A DNA stretch of 64,000 bases, taken from Macrostomum hystrix. Taxonomy: Eukaryota > Animalia > Platyhelminthes. The stretch spans positions 3,224,001 through 3,288,000 of the forward strand of contig CATNEN010000038.1 in NCBI GenBank assembly GCA_950097015.1, read 5' to 3'. The translations under genes and the position numbers were made by a program. Every line of letters starts with the position of its first letter. Position 1 is the first letter of the stretch. A model generated the notes under the pieces. It did not search any database. It was given only the letters and a program-made list of their open reading frames with translations, and was not told the origin of the DNA. Positions 1 to 42,839 of this stretch are shown here, in pieces.

Positions 1-710
1 TTTAGCTATGAGCCATGATTCAGACTCTGGTGTAGCAATGATTCAGACTCTGGTTTAGTCATGATTCAGACTCTGGTTTAGCTATGATTCAAACTCTGGT
101 TTAGCCATGATTCAGACTCTGGTGTAGCCATGATTCAGACTCTGGTGTAGCAATGATTCAGACTTTGGTTTAGCCATGATTCAGACTCTGGTTTAGCCAT
201 GATTCAGACTCTGGTTTAGCCATGATTCAGACTCTGGTGTAGCCATGATTCAGACTCTGGTTTAGCCATGATTCAGACTCTGGTTTAGCCATGATCCAGA
301 CTCTGGTTTAGCCATGATTCAGACTCTGGTGTAGCCATGATTCAGACTCTGGTTTAGCCATGATCCAGACTCTGGTTTAGCCTTGATTCAGACTCTGGTT
401 TAGCCATGATTCAGACTCTGGTTTAGCCATGATTCAGACTCTGGTTTTGCCATGATTCAGACTCTGGTGTAGCCATGATTCAGACTCTGGTTTTGCCATG
501 ATTCAGACTCTGGTGTAGCCATGATTCAGACTCTGGTGTAGCCATGATTCAGACTCTGGTGTAGCCATGATTCAGACTCTGGTTTAGCCATGATTCAAAC
601 TCTGGGTTAGCCATGATTCAAAATCTGGTTTAGCCATGATTCAAACTCTGGGTTAGCCATGATTCAAGCTCTATTTTTGCCATGATTCAAAATCAGGTTT
701 GCTATGATTT
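1..710. repeat. 23-bp minisatellite (TTAGCCATGATTCAGACTCTGGT)n inside Helitron A
   Basis: Directly visible tandem 23-mers. Confidence 0.95.
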
Positions 711-1279
711 ATGATATTTTATTTACGAAATAAAAAAAAAATCAAAATAATCTTCAATCACTACTGGCTGAAAATTAGTCTAAATGATTTGACGCAGTGC
801 AGAATCGAACCCTAGCCTAGCCTATAACCTATTCCTAGTGCCTACACATCGGCTATTCCGACTGTTGGTTAGTGGGTGCAAAAATCAGCCTTATAAAATG
901 AATTCTTAAAGTTCTGGCTTTGTACAATGAAGTGAGAAAATAGAGTACACTCAGTCTCGCGGTTGGTTGTGTACATTTATTTCCAATTTGTCTCCAGAGT
1001 GCAGGCTTCTAACTCAGTCAGCGAGGGGGTGTTGCGCAATTTGACGATGCAATTCCAATTCAGCGGCAGTGAGTAAAATTCTCAATAGGCCAAGATGGTT
1101 TGACCTTTGAAAAATCATGTTTTTCGAATATTTAATCCCTTTAGCAATAAAGTTAAGCTTAATAAAAATACGTGTAAAATTGTCCCCATATTTGGCATCT
1201 TTTGGTGAAGAAATGGTGAAAATCGGTTGAGCGGTTCGGGAGAAAATCAATTACAACCAAGCAAGCATTTCATTTTTAG
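1..1279 (-). mobile_element. Non-autonomous Helitron type A, 5' part only (cut by the window edge; head tip deleted)
   Basis: 700-1279 closely matches 6660-7260 and, inverted, 50335-50940. It joins the next unit through a shared TAG (catttttag|ctgcc), with loss of the terminal ~10-15 nt. Confidence 0.85.
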
Positions 1280-2619
1280 CTGCCTTCGCTACCCTCTGGG
1301 TAGCCTCCCTGTGAGTTCTTATCAGTACGCGCGTGCGTTATCAAAACTGGCTCTGATGCAATCATTAAAATTGGCACTGGAGGCCTCACTGTGCACAAGC
1401 TGAAAACAAGAATGCATTAGAAAAGCCTATTTAAAACTGTTTTTCGAATATTTAATCCCCTTGGCAATGGAATTAAGCTTAATAAAATTACGTGTACCGA
1501 TTCCGGCCCATTTGTGATCTTTTGGCGAAGGAATTTTGAAAATCGGTTGAGCCGTTCGGGAGCTAGTCGATTGCAAACATACAAGCAAGCAAGATTTTCA
1601 TTTTTAGTATAATAGACTAGCTGCCTTCGCTACCCTCTGGGTAGCCTCACTGGAGTTCTTATCAGTTCGTTATCAAAACTGGCTCTGATGCAATCATTAA
1701 AGTTGGCACTGGAGCCTCACTGTGCACAAGCTGAAAACAAGAATGCATTAGAAAAGCCTATTTAAAACTGTTTTTCGAATATTTAATCCCCTTGCCAATG
1801 GAATTAAGCTTAATAAAATTACGTGTACCGATTCCGGCCCATTTGTGATTTTTTGGCGAAGGAATTTTGAAAATCGGTTGAGCCGTTCGGGAGCTAGTCG
1901 ATTGCAAACAAACATACAAGATTTTCATTTTTAGTATATAAGAAGACTAGCTGCCTTCGCTACCCTCTGGGTAGCCTCACTGGAGTTCTTATCAGTTCGT
2001 TATCAAAACTGGCTCAGATGCAATCATTAAAGTTGGCACTGGAGCCTCACTGTGCACAAGCTGAAAACAAGAATGCATTAGAAAAGCCTATTTAAAACAG
2101 TTTTTCGAATATTTAATCCCCTTGGCAATGGAATTAAGCTTAATAAAAATACGTGTACCGATTCCGGCCCAATTGCGATCTTTTAGTGAAAGAATTTTGA
2201 AAATCGGTTGAGCCGTTCGGGAGCTAGTCGATTGCAAACATACAAACATACAAACATACAAACAAGACTTTCATTTTTAGTATATTAACTAGCTGCCTTC
2301 GCTACCCTCTGGGTAGCCTCCCTTGAGTTCTTATCAGTGCCTTATCAAAATTGGCTCTGATGCAATCATTAAAATTGGCACTGGAGCCTCACTGTGCACA
2401 AGCTGAAAACAAGAATGCATTAGAAAAGCCTATTTAAAACAGTTTTTCGAATATTTAATCCCCTTGGCAATGAAATTAAGCTTAATAAAAATACGTGTAC
2501 CGATTCCGGCCCATTTGTGATCTTTTGGCGAAGGAATTTTGAAAATCGGTTGAGCCGTTCGGGAGCTAGTCGATTGCAAACATACAAACATACAAGATTT
2601 TCATTTTTAGTATATTAGA
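1277..2619 (-). mobile_element. Four ~330-340-bp mini-Helitrons (type B) in tandem
   Basis: Each has a minus-strand 3' end GCTACCC-AGA-GGGTAGC hairpin + GAAGGCAG + CTAG and a ~300-bp 5' part shared with the autonomous element. Confidence 0.9.
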
Positions 2620-2712
2620 CTAGCAAGTTTTGCCCCCCTTCGGGGAGCAGAAATACTTTTAATTCGTCTAGTATATACTTTTTAGCAGCTGAATTTACAG
2701 CTTTTTAAAGCT

Positions 2713-4818
2713 ACAATGAACCCCCAGTTGACAATGATCCCCCAGTTGACAATGATCCCCCACTTGACAATGAACCCCCAGTTGACAATGAACCCCCAGT
2801 TGACAACGATCCCACAGTTGACAATGATCCCCCATTTGACAATGATCCCCCAGTTGACAATGATCCCACAGTTAACAATGATCCCCCAGTTGACAAAGAT
2901 CCCCCAGTTCACAATGATCACCCAGTTGATGATGATCCCCCAGTTGATGATGATCCCCCAGTTGACAATGAACCCCCAGTTGACAATGAACCCCCAGTTG
3001 ACAACGATCCCACAGTTGACAATGATCCCCCATTTGACAATGATCCCCCAGTTGACAATGATCCCACAGTTGACAATGATCCCCCAGTTGACAAAGATCC
3101 CCCAGTTCACAATGATCACCCAGTTGATGATGATCCCCCAGTTGATGATGATCCCCCAGTTGAAAATGATCCCCCAGTTGACAATGATCCCCCAGTTGAC
3201 AATGATCCCCCAGTTGACAATGATCCCCCAGTTAACAAAGATCCCCCAGTTCACAATGATCCCCCAGTTGATGAAGTCTCCCCATTGATGATGATCCCCA
3301 GTTAACAATGTTCCTCCATTTGACAATGTTCCCCCAGTTGACAATGATCCCCCAGTTGATGATGATCACCCAGTTGACAATGATCCCCCAGTTGATGATG
3401 ATCCCCCAGTTGACAATGAACCCCCAGTTGACAATGAACCCCCAGTTGACAACGATCCCACAGTTGACAATGATCCCCCATTTGACAATGATCCCCCAGT
3501 TGACAATGATCCCACAGTTGACAATGATCCCCCAGTTGACAAAGATCCCCCAGTTCACAATGATCACCCAGTTGATGATGATCCCCCAGTTGATGATGAT
3601 CCCCCAGTTGAAAATGATCCCCCAGTTGACAATGATCCCCCATTTGACAATGATCCCCCAGTTGACAATGATCCCCCAGTTAACAAAGATCCCCCAGTTC
3701 ACAATGATCCCCCAGTTGATGAAGTCTCCCCATTGATGATGATCCCCAGTTAACAATGTTCCTCCATTTGACAATGTTCCCCCAGTTAACAATGATCCCC
3801 CAGTTGATGATGATCACCCAGTTGACAATGATCCCCCAGTTGACAATGATCCCCCAGTTGACAATGATCCCCCAGTTGACAATGATCCCCCAGTTGACAA
3901 TGATCCCCCAGTTAATGATGATCCCCCAGTTGAAAATGATCCCCCAGTTGACAATGATCCCCCAGTTGAGAATGATCCCCCAGTTGACAATGATCCCCCA
4001 GTTAACAAAGATCCCCCAGTTCACAATGATCCCCCAGTTGATGAAGTCTCCCCATTGATGATGATCCCTAGTTAACAATGTTCCTCCAGTTGACAATGTT
4101 CCCCCAGTTGACAATGATCCCCCAGTTGATGATGATCCCCCAGTTGACAATGATCCCCCAGTTGACAATGATCCCCCAGTTGACAATGATCCCCCAGTTG
4201 ACAATGATCCCGCCGGTTGACAATGATCCCACAGTTGACAATGAACCCCCAGTTGACAATGATCCCCCAGTTGATGATGATCCCCCAGTTGACAATGATC
4301 CCCCAGTTGACAATGATCCCCCAGTTGACAATGATCCCCCAGTTGACAATGATCCCGCCGGTTGACAATGATCCCACAGTTGACAATGAACCCCCAGTTG
4401 ACAATGATCCCCCAGTTGATGATGATCCCCCAGTTGACAATGATCCCCCAGTTGACAATGATCCCCCAGTTGACAATGAACCCCCAGTTGACAATTATCC
4501 CACAGTTGACAATGATCCCCCAGTTGACAAAGATCCCCCAGTTCACAATGATCACCCAGTTGATGATGATCCCCCAGTTGATGATGATCCCCCAGTTGAA
4601 AATGATCCCCCAGTTGACAATGAACCCCCAGTTGACAAAGATCCCCCAGTTGACAATGATCCCCCATTTGACAATGATCCCCCAGTTGACAATGATCCCC
4701 CAGTTGACAATGATCCCCCGGTTGACATTGATCCCCCAGTCGACAATTATCCCCCAGTTTACCATGATCCCCCAGTTCACCATGATCCCCATTTTGATGA
4801 TGACTCCCCAGTTGACGT
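2713..4818. repeat. 18-bp minisatellite (GTTGACAATGATCCCCCA)n
   Basis: Tandem 18-mers with higher-order blocks. These produce the MIPQLT / NWGIIV / QLGDHC repeat ORFs. Confidence 0.95.
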
Positions 4819-4879
4819 TGATTTTTCAAACAGGTTAGCCAAGATTCAAACTCAGGTTTCGCCATGTTTTAAACCCTGG

Positions 4880-6680
4880 TGGGCTATGATTCAAACTCTC
4901 GTTTTGCCATGATTCAGACTCTGGTTGGCTATGATTCAAACTCTGGTTTAGCCATGATTCGGACGCTGGTTTAGCCATGATTCAGACGCTGGTTTAGCCA
5001 TGATTGAAACTCTGGTTTAGCCATGATTCAAATTCTGGTTTAGCCATGATTCAGACGCTGGTTTAGCCATGATTCAGACGCTGGTTTAGCCATGATTCAG
5101 ACTCTGGTTTAGCCATGATTCAGACTCTAGTTTAGCCATGATTCAGACTCTGGTTTAGCCATGATTCAGACTCTATTTTAGCCATGATTCAGACTATGGT
5201 TTAGCCATGATTCAGACTCCAGTTTTGCCATGATTCAGACTCTGGTTTAGCCATGATTCAGACTCTGGTTTAGCCATGATTCAGACTCTGGTTAAGCCAT
5301 GATTCAGACTCTGGTTTAGCCATGATTTAAATTCTGGTTAAGCCATGATTCAGACTCTGGTTTAGCCATGATTCAAACTCTGGTTAAGCCATGATTCAAA
5401 CTCTGGTTTAGCCATGATTCAAACTCTGGTTTAGCCATGATTCAGACGCTGGTTTAGCCATGATTCAGACTCTGGTTTAGCCATGATTCAGACTCTGGTT
5501 TAGCCATGATACAGACTCTGGTTTAGCCATGATTCAAACTCTGGTTTAGCCATGATTCAAACTCTGGTTTAGCCATGATTCAGACGCTGGTTTAGCCATG
5601 ATTCAGACGCTGGTTTAGCCATGATTCAGACTCTAGTTTAGCCATGATTCAGACTCTGGTTTAGCCATGATTCAAACTCTATTTTAGCCATGATTCAGAC
5701 TATGGTTTAGCCATGATTCAGACTCCAGTTTTGCCATGATTCAGACTCTGGTTTAGCCATGATTCAGACTCTGGTTTAGCCATGATTCAAACTCTGGTTT
5801 AGCCATGATTCAAACTCTGGTTTAGCCATGATTCAGACTCTGGTTTAACCATGATTCAAACGCTGGTTTAGCCATGATTCAAACTCTGGTTTAGCCATGA
5901 TTCAAACGATGGTTTAGCCATGATTCAAACTCTGGTTTAGCTATGATTCAAAATCTGGTTTAGCCATGATTCAAACGATGGTTTAGCCATGATTCAAACT
6001 CTGGTTTAGCCATGATTCAAACTCTGGTTTAGCCATGATTCAAACTCTGGTTGGCCATGATTCAAACTCTGGTTTTGCCATGATTCAAACTCTGGTTTAG
6101 CCATGATTCAAACGATGGTTTAGCCACGATTCAAACTCTGGTTTAGCCATGATTCAAACTCTGGTTGGCCATGATTCAAACTCTGGTTTTGCCATGATTC
6201 AAACTCTGGTTTAGCCATGATTCAAACGATGGTTTAGCCATGATTCAGACTCTGGTTTAGCCATGATTCAAACTCTGGTTTAGCCATGATTCAAACGATG
6301 GTTTAGCCATGATTCAAACGCTGGTTTAGCCATGATTCAAACTCTGGTTGGCCATGATTCAAACTCTGGTTTTGCCATGATTCAAACTCTGGTTTAGCCA
6401 TGATTCAAACGCTGGTTTAGCCATGATTCAAGCTCTGGTTTAGCCATGATTCAGACTCTGGTTTAGGCATGATTCAAACTCTGGTTTAGCCATGATTCAG
6501 ACTCCAGTTTTGCCATGATTCAGACTCTGGTTTAGCCATGATTCAGACTCTGGTTTAGCCATGATTCAGACTCTGGTTTAGCCATGATTCAAACTCTGGT
6601 TTAGCCATGATTCAGACTATGGTTTAGCCATGATTCAAACTCAGGTTTGCTATGACAAACTCAGGTTTGCTATGATTTAT
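4880..6680. repeat. 23-bp minisatellite (TTAGCCATGATTCARACTCTGGT)n
   Basis: Tandem 23-mers. Confidence 0.95.
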
Positions 6681-7273
6681 GATATTTTATTTACGAAATG
6701 AAAAAATAAATTAAAATAATCTTCAATCACTACTGGCTGAAAATTAGTCTAAATGATTTGACGCAGTGCAGAATCGAACCCTAGCCTAGCCTATAACCTA
6801 TTCCTAGTGCCTACACATCGGCTATTCCGACTGTTGGTTAGTGGGTGCAAAAATCAGCCTTATAAAATGAATTCTCAAAGTTCTGGCTTTGTACAATGAA
6901 GTAAGAAAATAGAGTACACTCAGTCTCGCGGTTGGTTGTGTACATTTATTTCCAATTTGTCTCCAGAGTGCAGGCTTCAAATTCAATCAGCTAGGGGTTG
7001 TTGCGCAATTTGACGACGCAATTCTAATTCAGTGGCTGTCAGTGAAATTCTCAATAGGCCAAGATGGTTTGACCTTTGAAAAAATCATGTTTTTCGAATA
7101 TTTAATCCCTTTAGCAATAAAGTTAAGCTTAATAAAAATACGTGTATAATTGTCCCCATATTTAGCATCTTTTGGTGAAGAAATGGTGAAAATCGGTTGA
7201 GCCGTTCGGGAGAAAATCAATTACAAGCAACCAACCAACCAACCAAGCATTTCATTTTTAGTATAGTGGAAGA

Positions 7274-10200
7274 CTAGCAATGCTGAGCCTAGTTATCTAT
7301 AAAAGTGTTGAGCCTAGATAACTATCAATGCTGAGCCTAGTTTTCTATCGATTCTGACCCTTGGAACCTATCAATTCTGAGCTTGGATATCTATCAATGC
7401 TGAGCCTAGATATCTATCAATGTTGAGCCTAGATAACTATCAATGCTGAGCCTAGTTATCTATAAAAATGTTGAGCCTAGATAACTATCAATGCTGAGCC
7501 TAGATAACTATCAATGCTGAGCCTAGATAACTATCAATGCTGTGCCTAGATAGCTATCAATGCTGAGCCTAGATAACTATCAATGCTGTGCCTAGAGAAC
7601 TATCAATCCTAAGCCTAGATAACTATCAATGCTGAGCCTAGATAGCAATCAATGCTGAGCCTAGGTAACTATCAATGCTGAGCCTAGGTAACTATCAATG
7701 CTAAGCCTAGGTAACTATCAATGCTGAGCCTAGGTAACTATCAATGCTGAGCCTAGGTAACTATCAATGCTAAGCCTAGATAACTATCAATGCTCAGCCT
7801 AGGTAACTATCAATGCTGAGCCTAGGTAACTATCAATGCTGAGCCTAGGTAACTATCAATGCTGAGCCTAGGTAACTATCAATGCTGAGCCTAGTTATCT
7901 ATAAAAATGTTGAGCCTAGATAACTATCAATCCTAAGCCTAGATAACTATCAATCCTAAGCCTAGATAACTATCAATGTTGAGCCTAGGTAACTATCAAT
8001 GCTGAGCCTAGGTAACTATCAATGCTGAGCCTAGTTATCTATAAAAATGTTGAGCCTAGATAACTATCAATCCTAAGCCTAGATAACTATCAATCCTAAG
8101 CCTAGATAACTATCAATGTTGAGCCTAGATAACTATCAATGCTGAGCCTAGGTAACTATCAATGCTGAGCCTAGTTATCTATAAAAATGTTGAGCCTAGA
8201 TAACTATCAATGCTGAGCCAAGATAACTATCAATGCTGAGCCTAGATAACTATCAATGCTGTGCCTAGATATCTATCAATGCTGAGCCTAGATATCTATC
8301 AATGTTGAGCCTAGTTAACTATCAATGCTGAGCCTGGATAACTATCAATGTTGAGCCTAGATAACTATCAATGCTGAGCCTAGATATTTATCAATGTTGA
8401 GCCTAGATAACTATCAATGCTGAGCCTAGATAACTATCAATGCTGAGCCTAGAAAACTATCAATGCTGAGCCTAGATAACTATCAATGCTGTGCCTAGAT
8501 GACTATCAATGCTGTGCCTAGTTATCTATAAAAATGTTGAGCCTAGATAACTATCAATGCTGAGCCTAGTTTTCTATCAATTCTGAGCTTGGATATCTAT
8601 CAATGCTGAGCCTAGATAACTATAAAAATGTTGAGCCTAGATACTATCAATGCTGAGCCTAGTTATCTATAAAAATGTTGAGCCTAGATAACTATCAATG
8701 CTGAGCCTAGGTAACTATCAATGCTAAGCCTAGGTAACTATCAATGCTGAGCCTAGGTAACTATCAATGCTGAGCCTAGGTAACTATCAATGCTAAGCCT
8801 AGATACTATCAATGCTGAGCCTAGTTATCTATAAAAGTGTTGAGCCTAGATAACTATCAATGCTGAGCCTAGTTTTCTATCGATTCTGACCCTTGGAACC
8901 TATCAATTCTGAGCTTGGATATCTATCAATGCTGAGCCTAGATATCTATCAATGTTGAGCCTAGATAACTATCAATGCTGAGCCTAGTTATCTATAAAAA
9001 TGTTGAGCCTAGATAACTATCAATGCTGAGCCTAGATAACTATCAATGCTGAGCCTAGATAACTATCAATGCTGTGCCTAGATAGCTATCAATGCTGAGC
9101 CTAGATAACTATCAATGCTGTGCCTAGAGAACTATCAATCCTAAGCCTAGATAACTATCAATGCTGAGCCTAGATAGCAATCAATGCTGAGCCTAGGTAA
9201 CTATCAATGCTGAGCCTAGGTAACTATCAATGCTAAGCCTAGGTAACTATCAATGCTAAGCCTAGGTAACTATCAATGCTGAGCCTAGGTAACTATCAAT
9301 GCTGAGCCTAGGTAACTATCAATGCTAAGCCTAGATAACTATCAATGCTCAGCCTAGGTAACTATCAATGCTGAGCCTAGGTAACTATCAATGCTGAGCC
9401 TAGGTAACTATCAATGCTGAGCCTAGGTAACTATCAATGCTAAGCCTAGGTAACTATCAATGCTGAGCCTAGGTAACTATCAATGCTGAGCCTAGGTAAC
9501 TATCAATGCTAAGCCTAGGTAACTATCAATGCTGAGCCTAGGTAACTATCAATGCTGAGCCTAGTTATCTATAAAAATGTTGAGCCTAGATAACTATCAA
9601 TCCTAAGCCTAGATAACTATCAATCCTAAGCCTAGATAACTATCAATGTTGAGCCTAGATAACTATCAATGCTGAGCCTAGGTAACTATCAATGCTGAGC
9701 CTAGTTATCTATAAAAATGTTGAGCCTAGATAACTATCAATGCTGAGCCTAGTTTTCTATCGATTCTGACCCTTGGAACCTATCAATTCTGAGCTTGGAT
9801 ATCTATCAATGCTGAGCCTAGATATCTATCAATGTTGAGCCTAGATAACTATCAATGCTGAGCCTAGATAACTATCAATGCTGTGCCTAGATAACTATCA
9901 ATGCTGAGCCTAGATAACTATCAATGCTGAGCCTAGATAACTATTAATGCTGAGCCTAGATAACTATCAATGCTGAGCCTAGTTATCTACAAAAATGTTG
10001 TGCCTAGATAACTATCAATGCTGTGCCTAGTTTTCTATCGATTCTGACCCTTGGAACCTATCAATTCTGAGCTTGGATATCTATCAATGCTGAGCCTAGA
10101 TGTCTATAAAAATGTTGATCCTAGATATTTATCGATTCTGAGCCTAGTAATCTATCAATTCTGGGCCTAGATTTATATCAATGCTGAGCCTAGTTAACTA

Positions 10201-11094
10201 TCAATGCTGAGCCTAGATAACAATTGATGCTGTGCCTAGATATCTATAAAAATGTTGAGCATAGATAACTATCAATGCTGTGCCTAGATAACTATCAATG
10301 CTGAGCCTAGTTAACTATCAATGCTGAGCCTAGTTAACTATCAATGCTGAGCCTAGATAACAATTGATGCTGTGCCTAGATATCTATAAAAATGTTGAGC
10401 ATAGATAACTATCAATGCTGTGCCTAGATAACTATCAATGCTGAGCCTAGATATCTATCAATGCTTTTGCAAGTAAGTAAGCAAGTAAGCAAGTAGGTAA
10501 GCAAGTATAATCAAGAAATGTTACTTGCTGCCAAGAAAGGCCGATCACTTGAATCAATGCAGTTCTCAGCTGTTGCCTTTGGAGTATGCTGTGATGTGAA
10601 TGAATCTGCTATAATTGAAATCTGCTATATCTGCTAAATGAGTTTGAATAAAACTCAATAAATAAAAATAAAAAAATATCTCAGTGCCGAACAGATAACA
10701 GAAGCCAGCTCAGCCTGTGCACATTGGACAGTAATTATCTCGCCAGTGGGGTTGACACAGCTATGCACATTTGGGTGAGAAATTCCTTATCAGTACGCTC
10801 GCCTAACAAAACTGGCTCTGATGCAATCATTAAATTTGGCACTGGAGGCCTCACTGTGCACAAGCTGAAAACAAGAATGCATTAGAAAAGCCTATTTAAA
10901 ACAGTTTTTCGAATATTTAATCCCCTTGGCAATGGAATTAAGCTTAATAAAAATACGTGTACCGATTCCGGCCCATTTGTGATCTTTTGGCGAAGGAATT
11001 GTGAAAATCGGTTGAGCCGTTCGGGAGCTAGTCGATTGCAAACATACAAGCAAGCAAGCAAGCAAGCAAGATTTTCATTTTTAGTATATTAATA
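7274..11094 (-). mobile_element. Non-autonomous Helitron type C, copy 1 (5' ~560 bp like the autonomous element + expanded 23-bp satellite)
   Basis: 10535-11094 is homologous to 20655-21185. The element ends at a CTAG inside the satellite. A near-identical copy lies at +27034. Confidence 0.88.
7278..10465. repeat. 23-bp minisatellite (TCAATGCTGAGCCTAGATAACTA)n
   Basis: Tandem 23-mers; the variant series starting at 7278 recurs at 8810 (higher-order duplication). Confidence 0.95.
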
Positions 11095-11351
11095 CTAGCA
11101 ATTTGTGCCCCCCTTTGGGGAGCTTAAACCTAAAGGCAACTTTGAAATTATGAAACAATTTTGGTTAGTCAATAAAAAAATGTATAGCAGCTAACGAAGT
11201 TCAGTATTTAAACAAACAAAAATGTAAACTTTTATTGACGACCTAATAAAATGAAATAAAATAAAATCTCTTTTATTGATGCTCCTTTGTCCTTTACCAT
11301 ACAAATCTAGACAGTCCCTTGTCCAAATATATACTGATTTAGGTGCTGATT

Positions 11352-11970
11352 CAGATGCATCTGCAGAAATCGCCACCAGCAAGACCAGAAACCCTGCACA
11401 GTTTGATCAACTGGATCTATTCCCAGGTGTCAGTCTTTCTACTTGCTGGCTTCAAGTCCGCATGGGAGATTGAATTTGAGAAGTCAATAATAGTAAAATA
11501 AGAAATGTAGCAATCAATCCACTTTAGGCCAGTTAATAACTGCAAACTCATTCTCACATATTTCAGTGACAATAAAATTAGTAGTGAGGTGGGGGTTGGG
11601 CAGATGCTTCTGCAGAGTTTGCCACCAGCAAGACCAGAAACCCTGCACAGTTTGATCAAATTGATCTATTCCCAGGTGTCAGTCTTTCTACTTGCTGGCT
11701 TCAAGTCCGCATGGGAGATTGAATTTGAGAAGTCAATAATAGTAAAATAAGAAATGTAGCAATCAATCCACTTTAGGCCAGTTAATAACTGCAAACTCAT
11801 TCTCACATATTTCAGTGACAATAAAATTAGTAGTGAGGTGGGGGTTGGGCAGATGCTTCTGCAGAGTTTGCCACCAGCAAGACCAGAAACCCTGCACAGT
11901 TTGATCAAATGGATCTATTCTCAGGTGTCAGTCTTTCTGCTTGCTGGCTTCAACTCCGCATCGTGGGAGA
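11352..11970. repeat. ~2.5 copies of a 249-bp tandem repeat in the Helitron 3' region (also at +12127)
   Basis: GCCACCAGCAAGACCAGAAACCC recurs at 11372, 11621 and 11870. Confidence 0.9.
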
Positions 11971-12222
11971 CATGCATGGGGGCTAAGCAATGCACTCAGC
12001 ACACTCAGCAGCTGGGAACAGCTGTTTACTCTCGAATTAAGCATCACAAGGAGCCTACAGGTCTGCTAAGGCTACTTCAGACCATGGTTGCATAGTCTCT
12101 CCAGTTTAAGCAGAAGAAAGTATGGATCATGAAAGTAGCGAACATGTACTTTTCAACTGCTTCTCAGGGCCCACACTATGCAGCCAACCTGCTCTCACTA
12201 CAGTGGCACGAAACCTTACAAT

Positions 12223-12511
12223 GCTAATCTATATTTGTCTACATTTTATTTTCAAGCTTTTGCTTGCAATTTTCGCACATGAAGTGCTCAATTATTTCTA
12301 GCTAATCTATATTTGTCTACATTTTATTTTCAAGCTTTTGCTTGCAATTTTCGCACATGAAGTGCTCAATTATTTCTAGCTAATCTATATTTGTCTAATT
12401 TTTTTCAAGCTTTTGCCTGCAATTTTCGCACATGAAGTGCTCAATTATTTCTAGCTAATCTATATTTGTCTAATTTTTTTCAAGCTTTTACTTGCAATTT
12501 TCGCACATGAA
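12223..12511. repeat. ~3.7 copies of a 75-78-bp tandem repeat (also at +12127)
   Basis: GCTAATCTATATTTGTCTA recurs at 12223, 12301, 12379 and 12454. Confidence 0.9.
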
Positions 12512-12779
12512 TGAGTAATTCTTTTCTATAATAGCTAGAATTATGTTTGTATCTGTTTGTTAATTAGCGAGCTTGAGTAGCATCGCATTTTTTCAAAATT
12601 TTATATGCTTCAGCTTTTGGCTGGTAATAATCTGACTAAATGGCTTTAACTATGGTGGTGCACTTGTTTTTAAGGTTTTTAGTGCCACTGTAACAGGATT
12701 TGAACTGATATGCCTTCCATGGGCCCATGGTGTTAAACACCATTTACATATCAGGTGGCTCAACTTGTGATACCGAGGT

Positions 12780-19087: not shown

Positions 19088-19207
19088 GATTGAGAACTGA
19101 AAAGTAAAATGAAATGATAAGTTGAGAGATAATGAAAGGCTTGAAAGAGAGATAGGTTGTGAAATTTGGATTTGAATTTCGATGTCTGAAGAATCAGATA
19201 AGGAGCC

Positions 19208-32200: not shown

Positions 32201-33311
32201 AGCCTAGATATCTATAAAATGTTGAGCCTAGATATCTATAAAAATGTTGAGCCTAGATATCTATAAAAATGTTGAGCCTAGATAACTATCAATGCTGAGG
32301 CTAGATAACTATCAATGCTGAGCCTAGAAATCTATCAATGCTGAGCCTAGATAATCATAAAAAATGTTGAGCCTAGATAACTATCAATGCTGAGCCTAGA
32401 TATCTATCAATGATGAGCCTAGATATCTATCAATGCTGAGCCTAGATATCTATCAATGCTGAGCCTAGATATCTATCAATGCTGAGCCTTTAGATATCTA
32501 TCAATGCTGAGCCTAGATATCTTTCAATGCTGAGCCTAGATATCCATAAAAATGTTGAGCCTAGATATCTATCTTCTATCTATGCTGAGCCTAGATAACT
32601 ATCAATGCTGAGCCTAGATATCTATCAATGCTGAGCCTAGATATCTATCAATGCTCAGCCTAGATATCTATCAATGCTCAGCCTAGATATCTATCGATTC
32701 TGAGCCTGGATTTGTATTTATGCTATTTGGCTGTGTCATTGTTGTGCCTGGGATTCGGTTCGGTTCGCTTCGCTCTGCTAGAAAAAGGCCGATCACTTGG
32801 ATCAATTCAGTTCTCAGCTGTAGCCTTTTGGTGTATGATGTGAATATGCTATTTGATTGAAAAAAACTCAATAAATAAATAAATAAAATAATAAAATATC
32901 ACACTGCCAGCAGTTAACAGAAGCCAGCTCAGCCTGTGCACATTGGGCAGTAATTATCTCGCCAGTGGGGTTGACACAGCTATGCACATTTGGGTGAGAA
33001 ATTTCTTATCAGTACGCTCGCCTAACAAAACTGGCCCTGATGCAATCATTAAAAATTGGCACTGGAGCCTCACTGTGCACAAGCTGAAAACAAGAATGCA
33101 TTAGAAAAGCCTATTTAAAACAGTTTTTCGAATATTTAATCCCCTTGGCAATGGAATTAAGCTTAATAAAATTACGTGTACCGATTCCGGCCCATTTGTG
33201 ATCTTTTGGCGAAGGAATTTTGAAAATCGGTTGAGCCGTTCGGGAGCTAGTCGATTGCAAACATACAAGCAAGCAAGCAAGCAAGATTTTCATTTTTAGT
33301 ATATAAGAAGA
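23222..33311 (-). mobile_element. Autonomous Helitron type D, copy 2
   Basis: The ORF track is identical to copy 1 at offset 12127; by eye it differs only in the head tip. Confidence 0.95.
24907..31214 (-). CDS. Helitron RepHel transposase, copy 2 (same 9-exon structure, +12127)
   Basis: All translated segments are identical to copy 1. Confidence 0.95.
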
Positions 33312-34307
33312 CTAGCTGCCTTCGCTACCCTCTGGGTAGCCTCACTGGAGTTCTTATCAGTTCGTTATCAAAACTGGCTCTGATGCAATCATTAAAATTG
33401 GCACTGGAGGCCTCACTGTGCACAAGCTGAAAACAAGAATGCATTAGAAAAGCCTATTTAAAACTGTTTTTCGAATATTTAATCCCCTTGCCAATGGAAT
33501 TAAGCTTAATAAAATTACGTGTACCGATTCCGGCCCATTTGTGATCTTTTGGCGAAGGAATTTTGAAAATCGGTTGAGCCGTTCGGGAGCTAGTCGATTG
33601 CAAACATACAAGCAAGCAAGCAAGCAAGATTTTCATTTTTAGTATATACTAGCTGCCCTTCGCTACCCTCTGGGTAGCCTACCTTGAGTTCTTATCAGTG
33701 CGTTATCAAAATTGGCTCTGATGCAATCATTAAAATTGGCACTGGAGGCCTCACTGTGCACAAGCTGAAAACAAGAATGCATTAGAAAAGCCTATTTAAA
33801 ACGGTTTTTCGAATATTTAATCCCCTTGGCAATGGAATTAAGCTTAATAAAAATACGTGTACCGATTCCGGCCCATTTGTGATCTTTTGGCGAAGGAATT
33901 GTGAAAATCGGTTGAGCCGTTCGGGAGCTAGTCGATTGCAAGCAAGCAAGATTTTCATTTTTAGTATATTAGACTAGCTGCCTTCGCTACCCTCTGGGTA
34001 GCCTCCCTTGAGTTCTTATCAGTGCCTTATCAAAATTGGCTCTGATGCAATCATTAAAATTGGCACTGGAGCCTCACTGTGCACAAGCTGAAAACAAGAA
34101 TGCATTAGAAAAGCCTATTTAAAACAGTTTTTCGAATATTTAATCCCCTTGGCAATGAAATTAAGCTTAATAAAAATACGTGTACCGATTCCGGCCCATT
34201 TGTGATCTTTTGGCGAAGGAATTTTGAAAATCGGTTGAGCCGTTCGGGAGCTAGTCGATTGCAAACATACAAACATACAAGATTTTCATTTTTAGTATAT
34301 TAGAAGA
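33312..34307 (-). mobile_element. Three type B mini-Helitrons
   Basis: Starts at 33312, 33649 and 33974. Confidence 0.92.
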
Positions 34308-37300
34308 CTAGCAATGCTGAGCCTAGTTATCTATAAAAGTGTTGAGCCTAGATAACTATCAATGCTGAGCCTAGTTTTCTATCGATTCTGACCCTTGGAA
34401 CCTATCAATTCTGAGCTTGGATATCTATCAATGCTGAGCCTAGATATCTATCAATGTTGAGCCTAGATAACTATCAATGCTGAGCCTAGTTATCTATAAA
34501 AATGTTGAGCCTAGATAACTATCAATGCTGAGCCTAGATAACTATCAATGCTGAGCCTAGATAACTATCAATGCTGTGCCTAGATAGCTATCAATGCTGA
34601 GCCTAGATAACTATCAATGCTGTGCCTAGAGAACTATCAATCCTAAGCCTAGATAACTATCAATGCTGAGCCTAGATAGCAATCAATGCTGAGCCTAGGT
34701 AACTATCAATGCTGAGCCTAGGTAACTATCAATGCTAAGCCTAGGTAACTATCAATGCTGAGCCTAGGTAACTATCAATGCTGAGCCTAGGTAACTATCA
34801 ATGCTAAGCCTAGATAACTATCAATGCTCAGCCTAGGTAACTATCAATGCTGAGCCTAGGTAACTATCAATGCTGAGCCTAGGTAACTATCAATGCTGAG
34901 CCTAGGTAACTATCAATGCTGAGCCTAGTTATCTATAAAAATGTTGAGCCTAGATAACTATCAATCCTAAGCCTAGATAACTATCAATCCTAAGCCTAGA
35001 TAACTATCAATGTTGAGCCTAGGTAACTATCAATGCTGAGCCTAGGTAACTATCAATGCTGAGCCTAGTTATCTATAAAAATGTTGAGCCTAGATAACTA
35101 TCAATCCTAAGCCTAGATAACTATCAATCCTAAGCCTAGATAACTATCAATGTTGAGCCTAGATAACTATCAATGCTGAGCCTAGGTAACTATCAATGCT
35201 GAGCCTAGTTATCTATAAAAATGTTGAGCCTAGATAACTATCAATGCTGAGCCAAGATAACTATCAATGCTGAGCCTAGATAACTATCAATGCTGTGCCT
35301 AGATATCTATCAATGCTGAGCCTAGATATCTATCAATGTTGAGCCTAGTTAACTATCAATGCTGAGCCTGGATAACTATCAATGTTGAGCCTAGATAACT
35401 ATCAATGCTGAGCCTAGATATTTATCAATGTTGAGCCTAGATAACTATCAATGCTGAGCCTAGATAACTATCAATGCTGAGCCTAGAAAACTATCAATGC
35501 TGAGCCTAGATAACTATCAATGCTGTGCCTAGATGACTATCAATGCTGTGCCTAGTTATCTATAAAAATGTTGAGCCTAGATAACTATCAATGCTGAGCC
35601 TAGTTTTCTATCAATTCTGAGCTTGGATATCTATCAATGCTGAGCCTAGATAACTATAAAAATGTTGAGCCTAGATACTATCAATGCTGAGCCTAGTTAT
35701 CTATAAAAATGTTGAGCCTAGATAACTATCAATGCTGAGCCTAGGTAACTATCAATGCTAAGCCTAGGTAACTATCAATGCTGAGCCTAGGTAACTATCA
35801 ATGCTGAGCCTAGGTAACTATCAATGCTAAGCCTAGATACTATCAATGCTGAGCCTAGTTATCTATAAAAGTGTTGAGCCTAGATAACTATCAATGCTGA
35901 GCCTAGTTTTCTATCGATTCTGACCCTTGGAACCTATCAATTCTGAGCTTGGATATCTATCAATGCTGAGCCTAGATATCTATCAATGTTGAGCCTAGAT
36001 AACTATCAATGCTGAGCCTAGTTATCTATAAAAATGTTGAGCCTAGATAACTATCAATGCTGAGCCTAGATAACTATCAATGCTGAGCCTAGATAACTAT
36101 CAATGCTGTGCCTAGATAGCTATCAATGCTGAGCCTAGATAACTATCAATGCTGTGCCTAGAGAACTATCAATCCTAAGCCTAGATAACTATCAATGCTG
36201 AGCCTAGATAGCAATCAATGCTGAGCCTAGGTAACTATCAATGCTGAGCCTAGGTAACTATCAATGCTAAGCCTAGGTAACTATCAATGCTAAGCCTAGG
36301 TAACTATCAATGCTGAGCCTAGGTAACTATCAATGCTGAGCCTAGGTAACTATCAATGCTAAGCCTAGATAACTATCAATGCTCAGCCTAGGTAACTATC
36401 AATGCTGAGCCTAGGTAACTATCAATGCTGAGCCTAGGTAACTATCAATGCTGAGCCTAGGTAACTATCAATGCTAAGCCTAGGTAACTATCAATGCTGA
36501 GCCTAGGTAACTATCAATGCTGAGCCTAGGTAACTATCAATGCTAAGCCTAGGTAACTATCAATGCTGAGCCTAGGTAACTATCAATGCTGAGCCTAGTT
36601 ATCTATAAAAATGTTGAGCCTAGATAACTATCAATCCTAAGCCTAGATAACTATCAATCCTAAGCCTAGATAACTATCAATGTTGAGCCTAGATAACTAT
36701 CAATGCTGAGCCTAGGTAACTATCAATGCTGAGCCTAGTTATCTATAAAAATGTTGAGCCTAGATAACTATCAATGCTGAGCCTAGTTTTCTATCGATTC
36801 TGACCCTTGGAACCTATCAATTCTGAGCTTGGATATCTATCAATGCTGAGCCTAGATATCTATCAATGTTGAGCCTAGATAACTATCAATGCTGAGCCTA
36901 GATAACTATCAATGCTGTGCCTAGATAACTATCAATGCTGAGCCTAGATAACTATCAATGCTGAGCCTAGATAACTATTAATGCTGAGCCTAGATAACTA
37001 TCAATGCTGAGCCTAGTTATCTACAAAAATGTTGTGCCTAGATAACTATCAATGCTGTGCCTAGTTTTCTATCGATTCTGACCCTTGGAACCTATCAATT
37101 CTGAGCTTGGATATCTATCAATGCTGAGCCTAGATGTCTATAAAAATGTTGATCCTAGATATTTATCGATTCTGAGCCTAGTAATCTATCAATTCTGGGC
37201 CTAGATTTATATCAATGCTGAGCCTAGTTAACTATCAATGCTGAGCCTAGATAACAATTGATGCTGTGCCTAGATATCTATAAAAATGTTGAGCATAGAT

Positions 37301-38127
37301 AACTATCAATGCTGTGCCTAGATAACTATCAATGCTGAGCCTAGTTAACTATCAATGCTGAGCCTAGTTAACTATCAATGCTGAGCCTAGATAACAATTG
37401 ATGCTGTGCCTAGATATCTATAAAAATGTTGAGCATAGATAACTATCAATGCTGTGCCTAGATAACTATCAATGCTGAGCCTAGATATCTATCAATGCTT
37501 TTGCAAGTAAGTAAGCAAGTAAGCAAGTAGGTAAGCAAGTATAATCAAGAAATGTTACTTGCTGCCAAGAAAGGCCGATCACTTGAATCAATGCAGTTCT
37601 CAGCTGTTGCCTTTGGAGTATGCTGTGATGTGAATGAATCTGCTATAATTGAAATCTGCTATATCTGCTAAATGAGTTTGAATAAAACTCAATAAATAAA
37701 AATAAAAAAATATCTCAGTGCCGAACAGATAACAGAAGCCAGCTCAGCCTGTGCACATTGGACAGTAATTATCTCGCCAGTGGGGTTGACACAGCTATGC
37801 ACATTTGGGTGAGAAATTCCTTATCAGTACGCTCGCCTAACAAAACTGGCTCTGATGCAATCATTAAATTTGGCACTGGAGGCCTCACTGTGCACAAGCT
37901 GAAAACAAGAATGCATTAGAAAAGCCTATTTAAAACAGTTTTTCGAATATTTAATCCCCTTGGCAATGGAATTAAGCTTAATAAAAATACGTGTACCGAT
38001 TCCGGCCCATTTGTGATCTTTTGGCGAAGGAATTGTGAAAATCGGTTGAGCCGTTCGGGAGCTAGTCGATTGCAAACATACAAGCAAGCAAGCAAGCAAG
38101 CAAGATTTTCATTTTTAGTATATTAGA
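34308..38127 (-). mobile_element. Non-autonomous Helitron type C, copy 2
   Basis: Same satellite variant order and 5' region as 7274-11094. Confidence 0.9.
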
Positions 38128-41100
38128 CTAGCTGCCTTCGCTACCCTCTGGGTAGCCTCCCTGTGAGTTCTTATCAGTACGCGCGTGCGTTATCAAAACT
38201 GGCTCTGATGCAATCATTAAATTTGGCACTGGAGGCCTAACTGTGCACAAGCTGAAAACAATAATGCATTAGAAAAGCCTATTTAAAACAGTTTTTCGAA
38301 TATTTAATCCCCTTGGCAATGGAATTAAGCTTAATAAAATTACGTGTACCGATTCCGGCCCATTTGTGATCTTTTGGCGAAGGAATTTTGAAAATCGGTT
38401 GAGCCGTTCGGGAGCTAGTCGATTGCAAACATACAAGCAAGATTTTCATTTTTAGTATAATAGAAGAAGACTAGCTGCCTTCGCTACCCTCTGGGTAGCC
38501 TCACTGGAGTTCTTATCAGTTCGTTATCAAAACTGGCTCTGATGCAATCATAAAAATTGGCACTGGAGCCTCACTGTGCACAAGCTGAAAACAAGAATGC
38601 ATTAGAAAAGCCTATTTAAAACAGTTTTTCGAATATTTAATCCCCTTAGCAATGAAATTAAGCTTAATAAAAATACGTGTACCGATTCGGGACCAATTGT
38701 GATCTTTTGGCGAAGGAATTGCGAAAATCGGTTGAGCCGTTCGGGAGCTAGTCGATTGCAAACAAGCAAGCAAGATTTTCATTTTTAGTATATTAGAAGA
38801 CTAGCTGCCTTCGCTACCCTCTGGGTAGCCTCCCTGTGAGTTCTTATCAGTACGCGCGTGCGTTATCAAAACTGGCTCTGATGCAATCATTAAATTTGGC
38901 ACTGGAGGCCTCACAGTGCACAAGCTGAAAACAAGAATGCATTAGAAAAGCCTATTTAAAACAGTTTTTCGAATATTTAATCCCCTTAGCAATGAAATTA
39001 AGCTTAATAAAAATACGTGTACCGATTCGGGACCAATTGTGATCTTTTGGCGAAGGAATTGCGAAAATCGGTTGAGCCGTTCGGGAGCTAGTCGATTGCA
39101 AACAAGCAAGCAAGATTTTCATTTTTAGTATATTAGACTAGCTGCCCTTCGCTACCCTCTGGGTAGCCTACCTTGAGTTCTTATCAGTGCGTTATCAAAA
39201 TTGGCTCTGATGCAATCATTAAAATTGGCACTGGAGGCCTCACTGTGCACAAGCTGAAAACAAGAATGCATTAGAAAGCCTATTTAAAACTGTTTTTCGA
39301 ATATTTAATCCCCTTGGCAATGGAATTAAGCTTAATAAAAATACGTGTACCGATTCGGGCCCATTTGTGATCTTTTGGCGAAGGAATTGTGAAAATCGGT
39401 TGAGCCGTTCGGGAGCTAGTCGATTGCAAACAAGCAAGCAAGCAAGCAAGCAAGCAAGATTTTCATTTTTAGTATATTAGAAGACTAGCTGCCTTCGCTA
39501 CCCTCTGGGTAGCCTCCCTTGAGTTCTTATCAGTGCCTTATCAAAATTGGCTCTGATGCAATCATTAAAATTGGCACTGGAGCCTCACTGTGCACAAGCT
39601 GAAAACAAGAATGCATTAGAAAAGCCTATTTAAAACAGTTTTTCGAATATTTAATCCCCTTGGCAATGAAATTAAGCTTAATAAAAATACGTGTACCGAT
39701 TCCGGCCCATTTGTGATCTTTTGGCGAAGGAATTTTGAAAATCGGTTGAGCCGTTCGGGAGCTAGTCGATTGCAAACAAGCAAGCAAGCAAGCAAGCAAG
39801 CAAGATTTTCATTTTTAGTATATTAGAAATTACAAGCAACCAAGCAAGCAAGCATTTCATTTTTAGTATAGTGGACTAGCTGCCTTCGCTACCCTCTGGG
39901 TAGCCTCCCTGTGAGTTCTTATCAGTACGCGTGCGTTATCAAAACTGCAGGCTCTGATGCAATCATAAAATTTGGCACTGGAGGCCTCACTGTGCACAAG
40001 CTGAAAACAAGAATGCATTAGAAAAGCCTATTTAAAACTGTTTTTCGAATATTTAATCCCCTTGGCAATGGAATTAAGCTTAATAAAAATACGTGTACTG
40101 ATTCGGGCCCATTTGTGATCTTTTGGCGAAGGAATTGTGAAAATCGGTTGAGCCGTTCGGGAGCTAGTCGATTGCAAACAAACATACAAGATTTTCATTT
40201 TTAGTATATTAGACTAGCTGCCTTCGCTACCCTCTGGGTAGCCTCCCTTGAGTTCTTATCAGTGCCTTATCAAAATTGGCTCTGATGCAATCATTAAAAT
40301 TGGCACTGGAGCCTCACTGTGCACAAGCTGAAAACAAGAATGCATTAGAAAAGCCTATTTAAAACAGTTTTTCGAATATTTAATCCCCTTGGCAATGAAA
40401 TTAAGCTTAATAAAAATACGTGTACCGATTCCGGCCCATTTGTGATCTTTTGGCGAAGGAATTTTGAAAATCGGTTGAGCCGTTCGGGAGCTAGTCGATT
40501 GCAAACATACAAACATACAAGATTTTCATTTTTAGTATATTAGACTAGCTGCCTTCGCTACCCTCTGGGTAGCCTCACTGGAGTTCTTATCAGTTCGTTA
40601 TCAAAACTGGCTCTGATGCAATCATTAAAATTGGCACTGGAGCCTCACTGCGCACAAGCTGAAAACAAGAATGCATTAGAAAAGCCTATTTAAAACTGTT
40701 TTTCGAATATTTAATCCCCTTGGCAATGGAATTAAGCTTAATAAAAATACGTGTACCGATTCCGGCCCAATTGTGATCTTTTGGCGAAGGAATTGTGAAA
40801 ATCGGTTGAGCCGTTCGGGAGCTAGTCGATTGCAAACAAGCAAGCAAGATTTTCATTTTTAGTATATTAGAAGACTAGCTGCCCTTCGCTACCCTCTGGG
40901 TAGCCTCACTGGAGTTCTTATCAGTGCGTTATCAAAACTGGCTCTGATGCAATCATTAAAATTGGCACTGGAGCCTCACTGTGCACAAGCTGAAAACAAG
41001 AATGCATTAGAAAAGCCTATTTAAAACAGTTTTTCGAATATTTAATCCCCTTGGCAATGGAATTAAGCTTAATAAAAATACGTGTATATGTGTCCCCATA

Positions 41101-41202
41101 TTTGGCATCTTTTGGTGAAGAAATGGTGAAAATTGGTTGAGCCGTTCGGGAGAAAATCAATTACGAACAAGCAAGCAAGATTTTCATTTTTAGTATATTA
41201 GA
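38128..41202 (-). mobile_element. Nine type B mini-Helitrons plus a 48-bp type A head stub (39828-39875)
   Basis: Starts at 38128, 38471, 38801, 39138, 39485, 39876, 40214, 40545 and 40875. The last unit has an A-like head interior. Confidence 0.9.
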
Positions 41203-42839
41203 AGAAGAAAGAAGAAGTATTGTGCTTAGAGGATTCTGCTTTTCACACTTATATGAACCTCTGGCTAGAATATCTAAAAACAGCCTTGACAAATGCCGGT
41301 GGACTCTGAATGTCTAGGGGTCTAGGGTGCTGAGTGGGGACTGGGGCAGAGGGCGCAATAAATAGTGTACATTACTGCGCGCTTTGACTGCATGTACATT
41401 GATACTGTCCAGAGGGGTGGGTGCCTTGCTGTCTATTAGTTAAATGTACGCTAATCGGCAAGAAAATAAATTAGCCCAGATAGGGTGAACAAGATTTGCA
41501 CTATTTCAGGTTTTATTGCGTTCGTCAAAACAATGATTTTTTATTTCGCTTGAATTCCTGACTAGGCACGGTTCGCTTTCCGCTTCAAGAAAGAATTTTT
41601 TGTAAAGGATGTAAAAACCTGCGTCACTTTGTGGAATGAAAATAAAATATTTTATCTTTTTTTCTGACGATAAGAAAGATTGCAACATTTCATTCTAGCA
41701 AGACTGCATGGAAACAATCATTGTACCTACGCCTTGACAGTAGAAGTAGAAAGACTGCATTAGAAGCTAATTTTGCGCCTGGGGAAAGAACACGGGGGTA
41801 TTACAAATTCCCACTGCCTATTTCACAATAGCTCCCAAACCGAATGACAGATTTTCGTGAAAGTCCACCATCTGGATCATAATTTTCCTCCCTTTACGAT
41901 GAACGACTTTCAAAGCTGTACGAGCCAGCATCGTCGAGATATTCAGCAAATCTTGTCGAAAGCCCTGGTGACAAGGACAAGTAACATTGCTCTGTAAACC
42001 TCTTTGGCAAATCCATAAACTCTTGTGAACAAAATCGTAGAGCCTGGAGGCAACAAGACGAGCTGCTGCAGGAGCTCTTTCTACGGAAAGTCTGACGGTC
42101 TACTTAATTGTTCTTGTCCGGAGTCATTTCTCATTTCGATTAGGAGTCTGATCGAGCTGGTGCAGCTATAGAAGTCATTGTCAACAAGTTGTCAGCACGA
42201 AATTTTAATGACTTGCAGAATTCTTTCGGTCACCCATGATTGGAGTCCGCAGTTGCTGCATCCCATACTCGTATTAATGCGTTTCTGCTGATGTAATCGG
42301 CCGAGAACGAGACTGTATTCAGTAACGCCATCAGTTTTACTGGTAATAGTGATTTCAACGTACCTTATTAACTGATAAAGTAACTCGAAGGGGTCATGAT
42401 GATGTCATGTTTGAATGTCCGCGCGATCGGACGAGTAGACATATTTGATTTATCTAATATCTAAACTAAATTCTTCCCTTCCTCAGGGTGATTGGTGCTT
42501 AGAGGTTTTGCCCGGCACATCGCAGAATAGAGGGTGACTGGCAGGGCGGTTTTCAGTAGATATACCACGGGGTTATTTCATACCCTCATTTTACTTTTTT
42601 CTGTTTCTGCTAAAATATTCAACCAATTCAACCAAATATTCCGCGACCTTCAGGCTGCCATCAGGCTGGCACTTGCCCAGGTAAAAACGGTGAGCCGCGC
42701 TCTCATAACGCGGATGCTGTGGCTGCTAATAGCGGCGGGAAAGGCAGCCGACAAGGCAAACGAAGTCTTTAGGCGAGGCGAGGGTGGCTGCAAGGTCGTC
42801 TTCGCTAGTCTGCACGTCTCCTTGCCCCAACCCAATCTG

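Follow-up and report, generated by a model that had tools for sequence, protein, structure and literature searches.

The subject of this report is a 64,000-nucleotide (nt) stretch of the genome of the flatworm Macrostomum hystrix (assembly GCA_950097015.1, contig CATNEN010000038.1, positions 3,224,001 to 3,288,000 of the forward strand; referred to below as the window), in which positions 1-41217 are taken up by an uninterrupted train of co-oriented Helitrons, all of whose elements lie on the minus strand. The train consists of a single superfamily sharing one RepHel, viz. the autonomous element D and three relatives, C, B and A, that are non-autonomous. The copies of D, of C and of one B variant (B*) in the train are identical only between their own termini and are placed among different neighbours, which points to transposition products that landed, all in the same orientation, at CTAG|T joints of the train, and we regard them as such rather than as products of unequal crossover. 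It is, in our assessment, rather probable that the train grew mainly by precise integration at the 5' terminus of resident copies.

Composition and extent of the train

Read from left to right, the order of the units is A, B4, A, C, D, B6, D, B3, C, B5, stub, B4, which in the 5' to 3' direction of the minus strand corresponds to B x4, a 48-nt stub of an A head together with a B unit, B x4, C, B x3, D, B x6, D, C, A, B x4 and A'. This order and the common orientation had been given in a preliminary description made from the letters of the window, and they are borne out by the parsing of the minus strand, on which all 28 heads in 1-41217, and likewise the pieces of the RepHel gene, are located (the single plus-strand head of the window is part of a separate element at 50.3 kb). 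As CTAG is palindromic and each B unit also carries a CTAG|TC on the plus strand, the possibility that the preliminary description was based on the wrong strand was considered too, and it was rejected because its unit order and borders are those of the minus-strand parsing. The recurring modules detected in 1-41.2 kb by Tandem Repeats Finder and self-BLAST are satellites of 23 and 18 bp, a repeat of ~335 bp and a GC-rich segment of 10 kb that is present twice.

The preliminary description had placed the train at 1-41217. Within these limits it is indeed uninterrupted, but it does not start at base 1, as in the flanking genome sequence it runs 10.1 kb further to the left. The whole train measures 51.3 kb and comprises 29 units plus the stub, with 28 of the units inside the window. 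On the right, the border near 41217 is blurred by TCT remnants and host DNA is found from ~41218. The position of the train is internal to a 35-Mb contig. Its parts, together with one solo element, are as follows (window coordinates; negative values lie to the left of the window).

Ending at -10112: a further A unit beyond A', with CTAG|T into host DNA
1..1279, on to -6254 left of the window, minus strand: unit A' (U28), non-autonomous, with 23-bp and 18-bp satellites; first 12 nt of the head lost
1280..2619, minus strand: B4, four non-autonomous B units of 330-342 nt (U27-U24)
2289-2619: U24, 100% identical to U3 and U11
2620..7273, minus strand: unit A (U23), 4654 nt, with an A-type head (TC..CCACT ATAC..) and a body of ~570 nt
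Within U23: 23-bp satellite at 4835-6677, 18-bp satellite at 2713-4816, hairpin and CTAG tail at 2620
7274..11094, minus strand: unit C1 (U22), 3821 nt, non-autonomous and derived from D, a D head plus 3.2 kb of 23-bp satellite
11095..21185, minus strand: unit D1 (U21), 10091 nt, putatively autonomous, hairpin and CTAG tail at 11095
19717-20584: 23-bp satellite of D1
12783..19264, minus strand: RepHel gene of D1, in ~9 exon-like pieces
21186..23221, minus strand: B6, six B units (U20-U15)
23222..33311, minus strand: unit D2 (U14), 10090 nt
33312..34307, minus strand: B3, three B units (U13-U11), of which U11 (33974-34307) is identical to U3 and U24
34308..38127, minus strand: unit C2 (U10), 3820 nt
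38128..39827, minus strand: B5, five B units (U9 to the B part of U5)
39828..39875, minus strand: stub of an A-type head (its first 48 nt), fused to the next B head without CTAG
39876..41217, minus strand: B4, four B units (U4-U1), with U3 at 40214-40544
40875-41217, minus strand: U1, an A/B chimera, whose 5' linker has about four TCT remnants (41197-41217)
50326..56113, plus strand: solo A-family Helitron outside the train and in opposite orientation, with host flanks A|TC ... CTAG|T

On the minus strand a module boundary takes the form of hairpin, 8-9 nt, CTAG and T(C), after which a short linker leads into the head motif ATACTAAAAATGAAA. All joints had earlier been described as CTAG|T without host DNA, and this holds for 26 of the 28 internal joints, which read [tail]CTAG|T[head] and in which no foreign DNA intervenes. 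Two joints depart from this, viz. that of the stub with B at 39827/39828, where no CTAG is present, and the joint 1279/1280 (..GGCAGCTA|AAAATG..), from which 1+12 nt have gone, namely the G that ends the B tail and the 12 nt with which the A head begins. A CTA microhomology occurs at the break of the latter joint. Adjacent B units are only 85-98% alike.

Identical units with different neighbours

The borders of identity were read from base-by-base alignments, and six of them (for D, C and U3/U24) were checked. D1 (21185->11095) and D2 (33311->23222) show zero differences over unit positions 28-10091; what sets them apart is confined to one (CTTG) repeat and to the 5' linker, which is TCTAAT in the one and TCTTCTTAT in the other. 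In their flanks, ~21 differences are found in the 300 nt upstream, while the downstream unit is C in one case and B in the other, the divergence starting 2-3 nt past the D terminus. Similarly, C1 and C2 have zero differences over positions 4-3821, inclusive of the 3.2-kb satellite, and their identity stops no more than 6 nt outside both termini. The B* copies U3, U11 and U24 are identical from terminus to terminus and are located behind a B, a C and an A tail, respectively. All six checked borders of identity thus lie within ~30 nt of the unit termini, most of them within 6 nt. The D and C copies had earlier been called near-identical, with different neighbours; the different neighbours are confirmed, but within their termini the copies are in fact 100% identical. 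If the insertions had occurred at random A|T sites, then the probability of four co-oriented hits on unit borders would be P ~3e-10, an estimate based on a pre-existing array of ~37 kb with ~3100 A|T sites and ~25 unit borders.

Several other ways of producing such copies were tried and rejected. BLAST at >=96% identity reports two "segmental duplications" of ~99% that extend across unit borders; these are an artefact of the homologous flanks, as the units themselves match to 100% and the match falls off at their termini. Copying of the synthesis-dependent strand annealing type, templated by homology at both ends, would carry the copy into the downstream head of the donor, yet the sequences part 2-3 nt past the end of D. 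Nor is gene conversion needed to account for the identity of D1 and D2, as D copies on other contigs are equally identical. The train also differs from a rolling-circle array of a single element in having four unit types in an aperiodic order. The conclusion of the preliminary description that neither concatemerization of one circle nor a simple segmental duplication accounts for the order therefore stands, as D, C and B* are identical only between their own termini.

A more general form of the recombination argument holds that unequal crossover, segmental duplication and gene conversion, acting between homologous heads, rearranged an array of the rolling-circle tandem or satellite-like kind, with no targeted insertion at all. 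A homologous head of ~190-300 nt in all units, the A/B chimera U1 and a duplicated five-unit block at another locus (described below) are in keeping with it. However, breakpoints would then be expected inside the 300-nt heads and the neighbours should be duplicated along with the units, whereas the observed borders are at the termini and the neighbours differ. Further, the order C-BBB-D-B6-D-C is impossible from a single tandem duplication, and local homogenisation is not needed where D copies on other contigs are just as identical. Recombination acting by itself is in view of this a quite unlikely explanation.

A mis-join or an over-expanded repeat graph could also have generated the aperiodic order and the duplicate D and C units, and exact repeats of 10 kb and 3.8 kb within 27 kb are certainly hard to assemble. 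However, the ends of the duplicated segments coincide exactly with biological termini, in each pair the copies differ in the 5' linker and in (CTTG)n and are no simple graph duplicates, and joints of the same types are found at dozens of loci on many contigs. An assembly artefact is therefore considered very unlikely.

Joints between Helitrons across the genome

The exact head motif is present 1011 times in the genome (a reversed control pattern occurs once), and in 582 of the 1011 cases (58%) a CTAG is located 1-14 nt upstream of the head, compared with 0-1 for the control pattern. This count of CTAG joints against solo insertions had been proposed in the preliminary description, and with its suggestion that family members insert at existing heads the result agrees, both in the train and genome-wide. 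Joints of a B tail to an A head number 33 and those of an A, C or D tail to a B, C or D head number 47, on more than 20 contigs, so that at least 80 joints between different families are present in the genome. Canonical insertion of this family into host DNA is seen as well, and both kinds of target (viz. host A|T and heads) are used. As a rough estimate, the preference for heads may amount to thousands-fold per site, if ~10^3 heads are set against an estimated 10^7 A|T sites and if joints between different families are counted as insertion events.

About nine D copies at 99-100% identity are found genome-wide, and judging from this D is a young element. All eight copies whose surroundings were fetched are located within co-oriented trains, directly behind a B tail. 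Their 3' ends, where resolved, abut another head, and the ninth copy has its 3' end attached to a B head. The B tails upstream of D are conserved between loci, due to which the 5' borders of D cannot be distinguished by comparison.

Position in the train and the age of the units

If new members are added only between the host A and the 5' T of the leading head, then the oldest units will be found on the left (3') and the youngest on the right (5'), and the train will be an ordered log of transposition events. Growth of this kind at the outermost A|TC head, likened to HeT-A/TART arrays and to the leader end of CRISPR, was the central proposal of the preliminary description, and its core, viz. 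that a host A and a resident 5' T recreate an A|T site, had already been proposed for a pair of maize Helitrons (PMC2267711). It needs no more than the canonical A|T rule. Further, the train 5' borders at two other loci are host A|TC, B units are present on the 5' side of every D copy examined, and in the present train the outermost head has more TCT remnants than any other.

However, the ages of the units do not follow this pattern. The genome was searched for siblings with multi-unit queries, by a search that gives lower bounds. The best sibling of U9 is 98% identical, that of U18+U19 97%, and the B6 block has no close match anywhere else in the genome (best 93-94%). A distance of 2-7% separates the other B units from their nearest relatives, whereas D, C and B* have exact siblings. 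Units lacking close siblings are therefore located 5' of D2 and C2, i.e. on the side where only younger units should be present, although D itself has ~8 siblings at 99-100%. The divergence of the B units from the B consensus, when plotted against position in the train as had been suggested earlier, shows no gradient (rho 0.24, p 0.35), and identical B* copies are present near both ends of the train as well as in its middle. Neither addition at one end nor a gradient of age, as seen in end-directed arrays that record order, is thus observed, and growth at the outermost head only is unlikely. As the B units surrounding the young copies lack close siblings and no gradient is present, at least some of the insertions should have taken place into internal G|T joints. 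Hence D2 at least, and probably other copies as well, would have gone into an older B array at one of its internal CTAG|TC joints. On this reading of the sequences, position along the train does not record time, and the train is a mosaic instead of a dated log.

The same data bear on a one-shot origin, in which a mixed circle multimer, or a multi-unit circle from another train, was integrated once at one A|T site. This alternative had been named in the preliminary description, and the single host site with its clean 3' flank CTAG|T is what it predicts. However, it also predicts equal ages, whereas D, C and B* are identical to their siblings and the other B units are 2-7% off; moreover, a block matching B6 was not found elsewhere in the genome. 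We regard an origin of this kind as highly improbable.

Stubs, chimeras, linkers and a duplicated block

Besides complete units, the trains contain head stubs of 27-141 nt and 1.7-kb 5' fragments of D (loci L001 and L004), which end exactly where a complete head starts, without CTAG. Examples of the stubs are seen at 39828-39875 in the window, at L001:4271-4456, at L007:9059-9174 and at other places. The possibility that they are the result of insertion inside heads was considered and rejected, as no complementary 3' remainders matching the stubs were found after a CTAG across the trains examined. In U1 the start is B-like, the next ~100 nt are of A type and the remainder is a B body; a chimera of this structure indicates recombination or template switching between families.

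The linker between CTAG and the head has a length of 3-19 nt and varies widely even among copies that apart from it are 100% identical (joints of the window and loci L001-L018). It often consists of a partial head (TCT, TCTA, TCTAA) followed by the full linker, while CTAG is much more rarely followed by a shortened linker (TAAT, TAT). About four TCT remnants are present at the outermost head of the train.

Unequal crossover, as was noted in the preliminary description, is expected to place breakpoints inside the shared heads and to make multi-unit blocks recur. The former is not seen at the six borders, which are all at termini, but the latter is observed in another train. At the locus L001-L003 (G000:C2:8013001-8043000) a block of five units (341, 45, 141, 344 and 338 nt) is duplicated, the first copy being followed by a 1.7-kb 5' fragment of D and the second by a full D. 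Judged from its structure, this locus shows that block duplication also shapes the trains. A variant of C that has kept a hairpin tail is found at L001-L003 as well.

The units as canonical Helitrons and the RepHel gene of D

On every feature tested, the units of the train are canonical Helitrons of the Helitron1 type. The termini 5' TC and 3' CTRR are present in the solo A copy (A|TCCACT... ...GCTAG|T) and in the 26 joints CTAG|T(C) of the window, and because the flanks of the solo copy are canonical (A|TC...CTAG|T), the termini of the train units can be taken as genuine Helitron termini. The tails of B, A and D each form a GC hairpin (7-8-bp stem, 3-nt loop), which stops 12 nt short of the terminus, whereas the C tail has none, its 3' end being newly formed inside the satellite (..CATTGCTAG). 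Insertion at A|T without target-site duplication is supported by the flanks of the solo A copy and by the train 3' flanks CTAG|T; on another contig, a host A precedes ~30 of 40 sampled solo (non-joined) heads. These termini (TC...CTAG) and A|T flanks are unlike those of Helentrons/Helitron2, which insert at T|T and have short terminal inverted repeats. No endonuclease domain, another feature of the latter group, was found in the scanned open reading frame (ORF) pieces, among which small ORFs downstream of the helicase were not exhaustively covered.

All units have in common the homologous head of ~190-300 nt mentioned above. C shares with D the first ~440 nt and the 23-bp satellite and ends at a new CTAG within this satellite, B shares the first ~300 nt with D and has a hairpin tail of its own, while in A the head is related and the tail resembles that of D. 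Satellite arrays of 18, 23, 69, 75 and 249 bp are carried by A, C and D. The 3' untranslated part of D contains tandem repeats of 249 bp and 75 bp (11352-11961, 12223-12511 and the D2 equivalents); the copy number of the 249-bp array is highly variable among D copies at other loci, where the length of D is 9.5-13.4 kb.

The minus strand of D encodes the Pfam domains Helitron_like_N, PIF1, Pif1_2B and UvrD_C_2, and the HUH motif, the tyrosine pair and PIF1, by which a Helitron RepHel is recognised, are all on the strand that runs from TC to CTAG. The coding region is present in about nine open pieces, and in five of them the end coincides exactly with a GTGAGT donor, an acceptor compatible in frame being present downstream. 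A match to Helraiser (PDB 7LCC, residues 316-590; E 1e-45) is seen for the Rep piece, which stops at ..QKRG; the HUH motif LPHVH is on the piece after it, and the tyrosine pair KYVIKY is on the one following. From the GTGAGT donors we infer introns in a RepHel gene whose reading frame is split. With the Helraiser match, the HUH motif, the tyrosine pair, PIF1 and the donors in place, the RepHel of D looks functional, and D is probably an autonomous element that is intact and contains introns. In frame within the first exon-like piece of RepHel (18441-18952 and 30568-31079) is a 69-bp repeat (7.4 copies, 98% alike), which has a weak match to Pfam STPR and forms a repetitive N-terminal region of the protein.

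How the train may have grown

For growth by integration at the 5' terminus of resident copies, the following series of steps can be envisaged. RepHel would bind the head of a resident element and nick 5' of its T, which is the usual reaction starting transposition, and the site would be either the CTAG|TC joint between two residents (G|T) or the host-A|TC border of the outermost head. The nick could then serve as target for strand transfer of an incoming single-stranded copy, whose 3'-OH end (normally CTAG, sometimes a premature end) would be joined to the resident 5' T, while its 5' TC would be joined to the upstream 3'-OH. Integration at a nicked head would lead to seamless co-oriented joints, to no target duplications and to head stubs, the latter because a prematurely terminated strand captured by a head would give a stub ending where the full head begins. 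The B arrays would be older and would probably have been expanded also by rolling-circle tandem formation and unequal crossover. Circles of Helraiser with a precise CTAG-TC joint serve as transposition donors (PMC5876387), which may imply that RepHel processes a G|T joint.

We further suggest, tentatively, although as a possibility to be taken seriously, that the RepHel of this lineage prefers the 5' termini of resident Helitrons, inclusive of internal CTAG|TC (G|T) joints. Self-nesting 'safe-harbour' trains would be formed in this manner, in which a joint would behave like a recombination site for single-stranded circles and prematurely terminated strands would be captured in the same way to give stubs.

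A number of points weigh against the interpretation favoured here. The argument from age hangs on the lack of close siblings of the B units, for which the search with multi-unit queries gives lower bounds. The canonical Helitron target is A|T, and the use of G|T is deduced only from the structure of the genome. Unequal crossover also acts in these trains, as is evident from the duplicated five-unit block at L001-L003. The order of the units rests on one assembly with exact 10-kb repeats 12 kb apart. Lastly, the 5' linkers (TCTAAT, TCTTCTTAT, TATTAAT) differ among copies that are otherwise identical, and this the model leaves unexplained.

Other features of the window

To the right of the train, an open frame of 1037 amino acids is present at 58702-61815 on the plus strand, which contains 33-nt repeats rich in Thr/Ser and has a weak match to the SEA domain; in appearance this is a mucin gene of the host and, like the short GTGAGT introns, it suggests an animal genome. 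A 7/14/35-bp tandem array (GATGGCA-type, ~0.9 kb) at 62193-63127 has a strong GC skew and overlaps long ORFs on both strands. A search for tRNA genes gave none.

Comparison with known systems and significance

Helitron tandems as such are known, and the new part here is the targeting of joints, which in the literature found has been proposed only for one maize pair. Homotypic tandems have been described for Helibat in Myotis, in Arabidopsis and for Helitron-1_DPe on the Y chromosome of Drosophila pseudoobscura, and were attributed to rolling-circle replication (PMC5876387; bioRxiv 10.1101/2021.06.02.446622). They resemble the train in their co-orientation and seamless head-to-tail CTAG-TC joints, and the B arrays look like them. 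However, the train mixes four families of 0.33-10 kb in an aperiodic order, and its identical single units between unrelated neighbours are impossible to obtain by concatemerisation of one circle. The maize pair is formed by two adjacent heterologous Helitrons in the r1 region, joined CTAG|TC at a G/T junction, for which Du et al. (2008, PMC2267711) argued consecutive insertions, either at a non-canonical G|T or canonically at the host A plus resident 5' T. That case concerns a single pair at one locus, whereas here there are 29 units, at least 80 mixed joints genome-wide, and evidence for the use of internal G|T joints. The co-oriented head-to-tail arrays of HeT-A/TART/TAHRE and of CRISPR loci growing at the leader end are likewise formed by repeated targeted addition; however, these systems add at one end only and thereby record order, whereas the present train is internal, is without a gradient of age and takes up insertions at joints in its interior. 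Local propagation of Helitrons has also been reported in cnidarian subtelomeres (bioRxiv 10.1101/2024.11.21.624632). A description of long mixed-family trains with evidence for joint-targeted integration was not found in the searchable literature.

In HUH transposons and relaxases (viz. IS608 TnpA, IS91, TrwC and AAV Rep, of adeno-associated virus) the target is chosen by the enzyme's own recognition of ends. The likeness to the present case is that the enzyme integrates where the sequence which it normally cleaves at the element end is recognised; the difference is that here this is deduced from genome structure only, and we know of no eukaryotic RepHel for which such targeting has been demonstrated. 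Background on IS91 and IS608 is cited in PMC5876387. Rolling-circle elements that carry satellites are exemplified by the Helentron-associated HINE elements of Crassostrea (PMC7492417). HINE, like DINE-TR1, a satellite-carrying rolling-circle element of Drosophila, are non-autonomous, contain internal tandem repeats and are mistakable for satellite DNA, and internal tandem repeats are likewise present in A, C and D. However, the elements of the train are canonical Helitrons (TC...CTAG, hairpin, A|T target) and not Helentrons, and the ~335-bp 'satellite' consists of whole elements.

According to the usual view, the target of a Helitron is 'any A|T'. If RepHel instead prefers the ends of its relatives, then this would account for the conversion of Helitrons into satellite-like arrays, and would explain how compound or chimeric Helitrons and substrates for end bypass originate and how an active DNA transposon can amplify while seldom hitting genes; the head or the CTAG|TC joint would also become a concrete, testable substrate for RepHel biochemistry. 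With a young and apparently intact autonomous element (~9 copies, 99-100%) and its three non-autonomous partners, the genome of M. hystrix looks like a natural test system.

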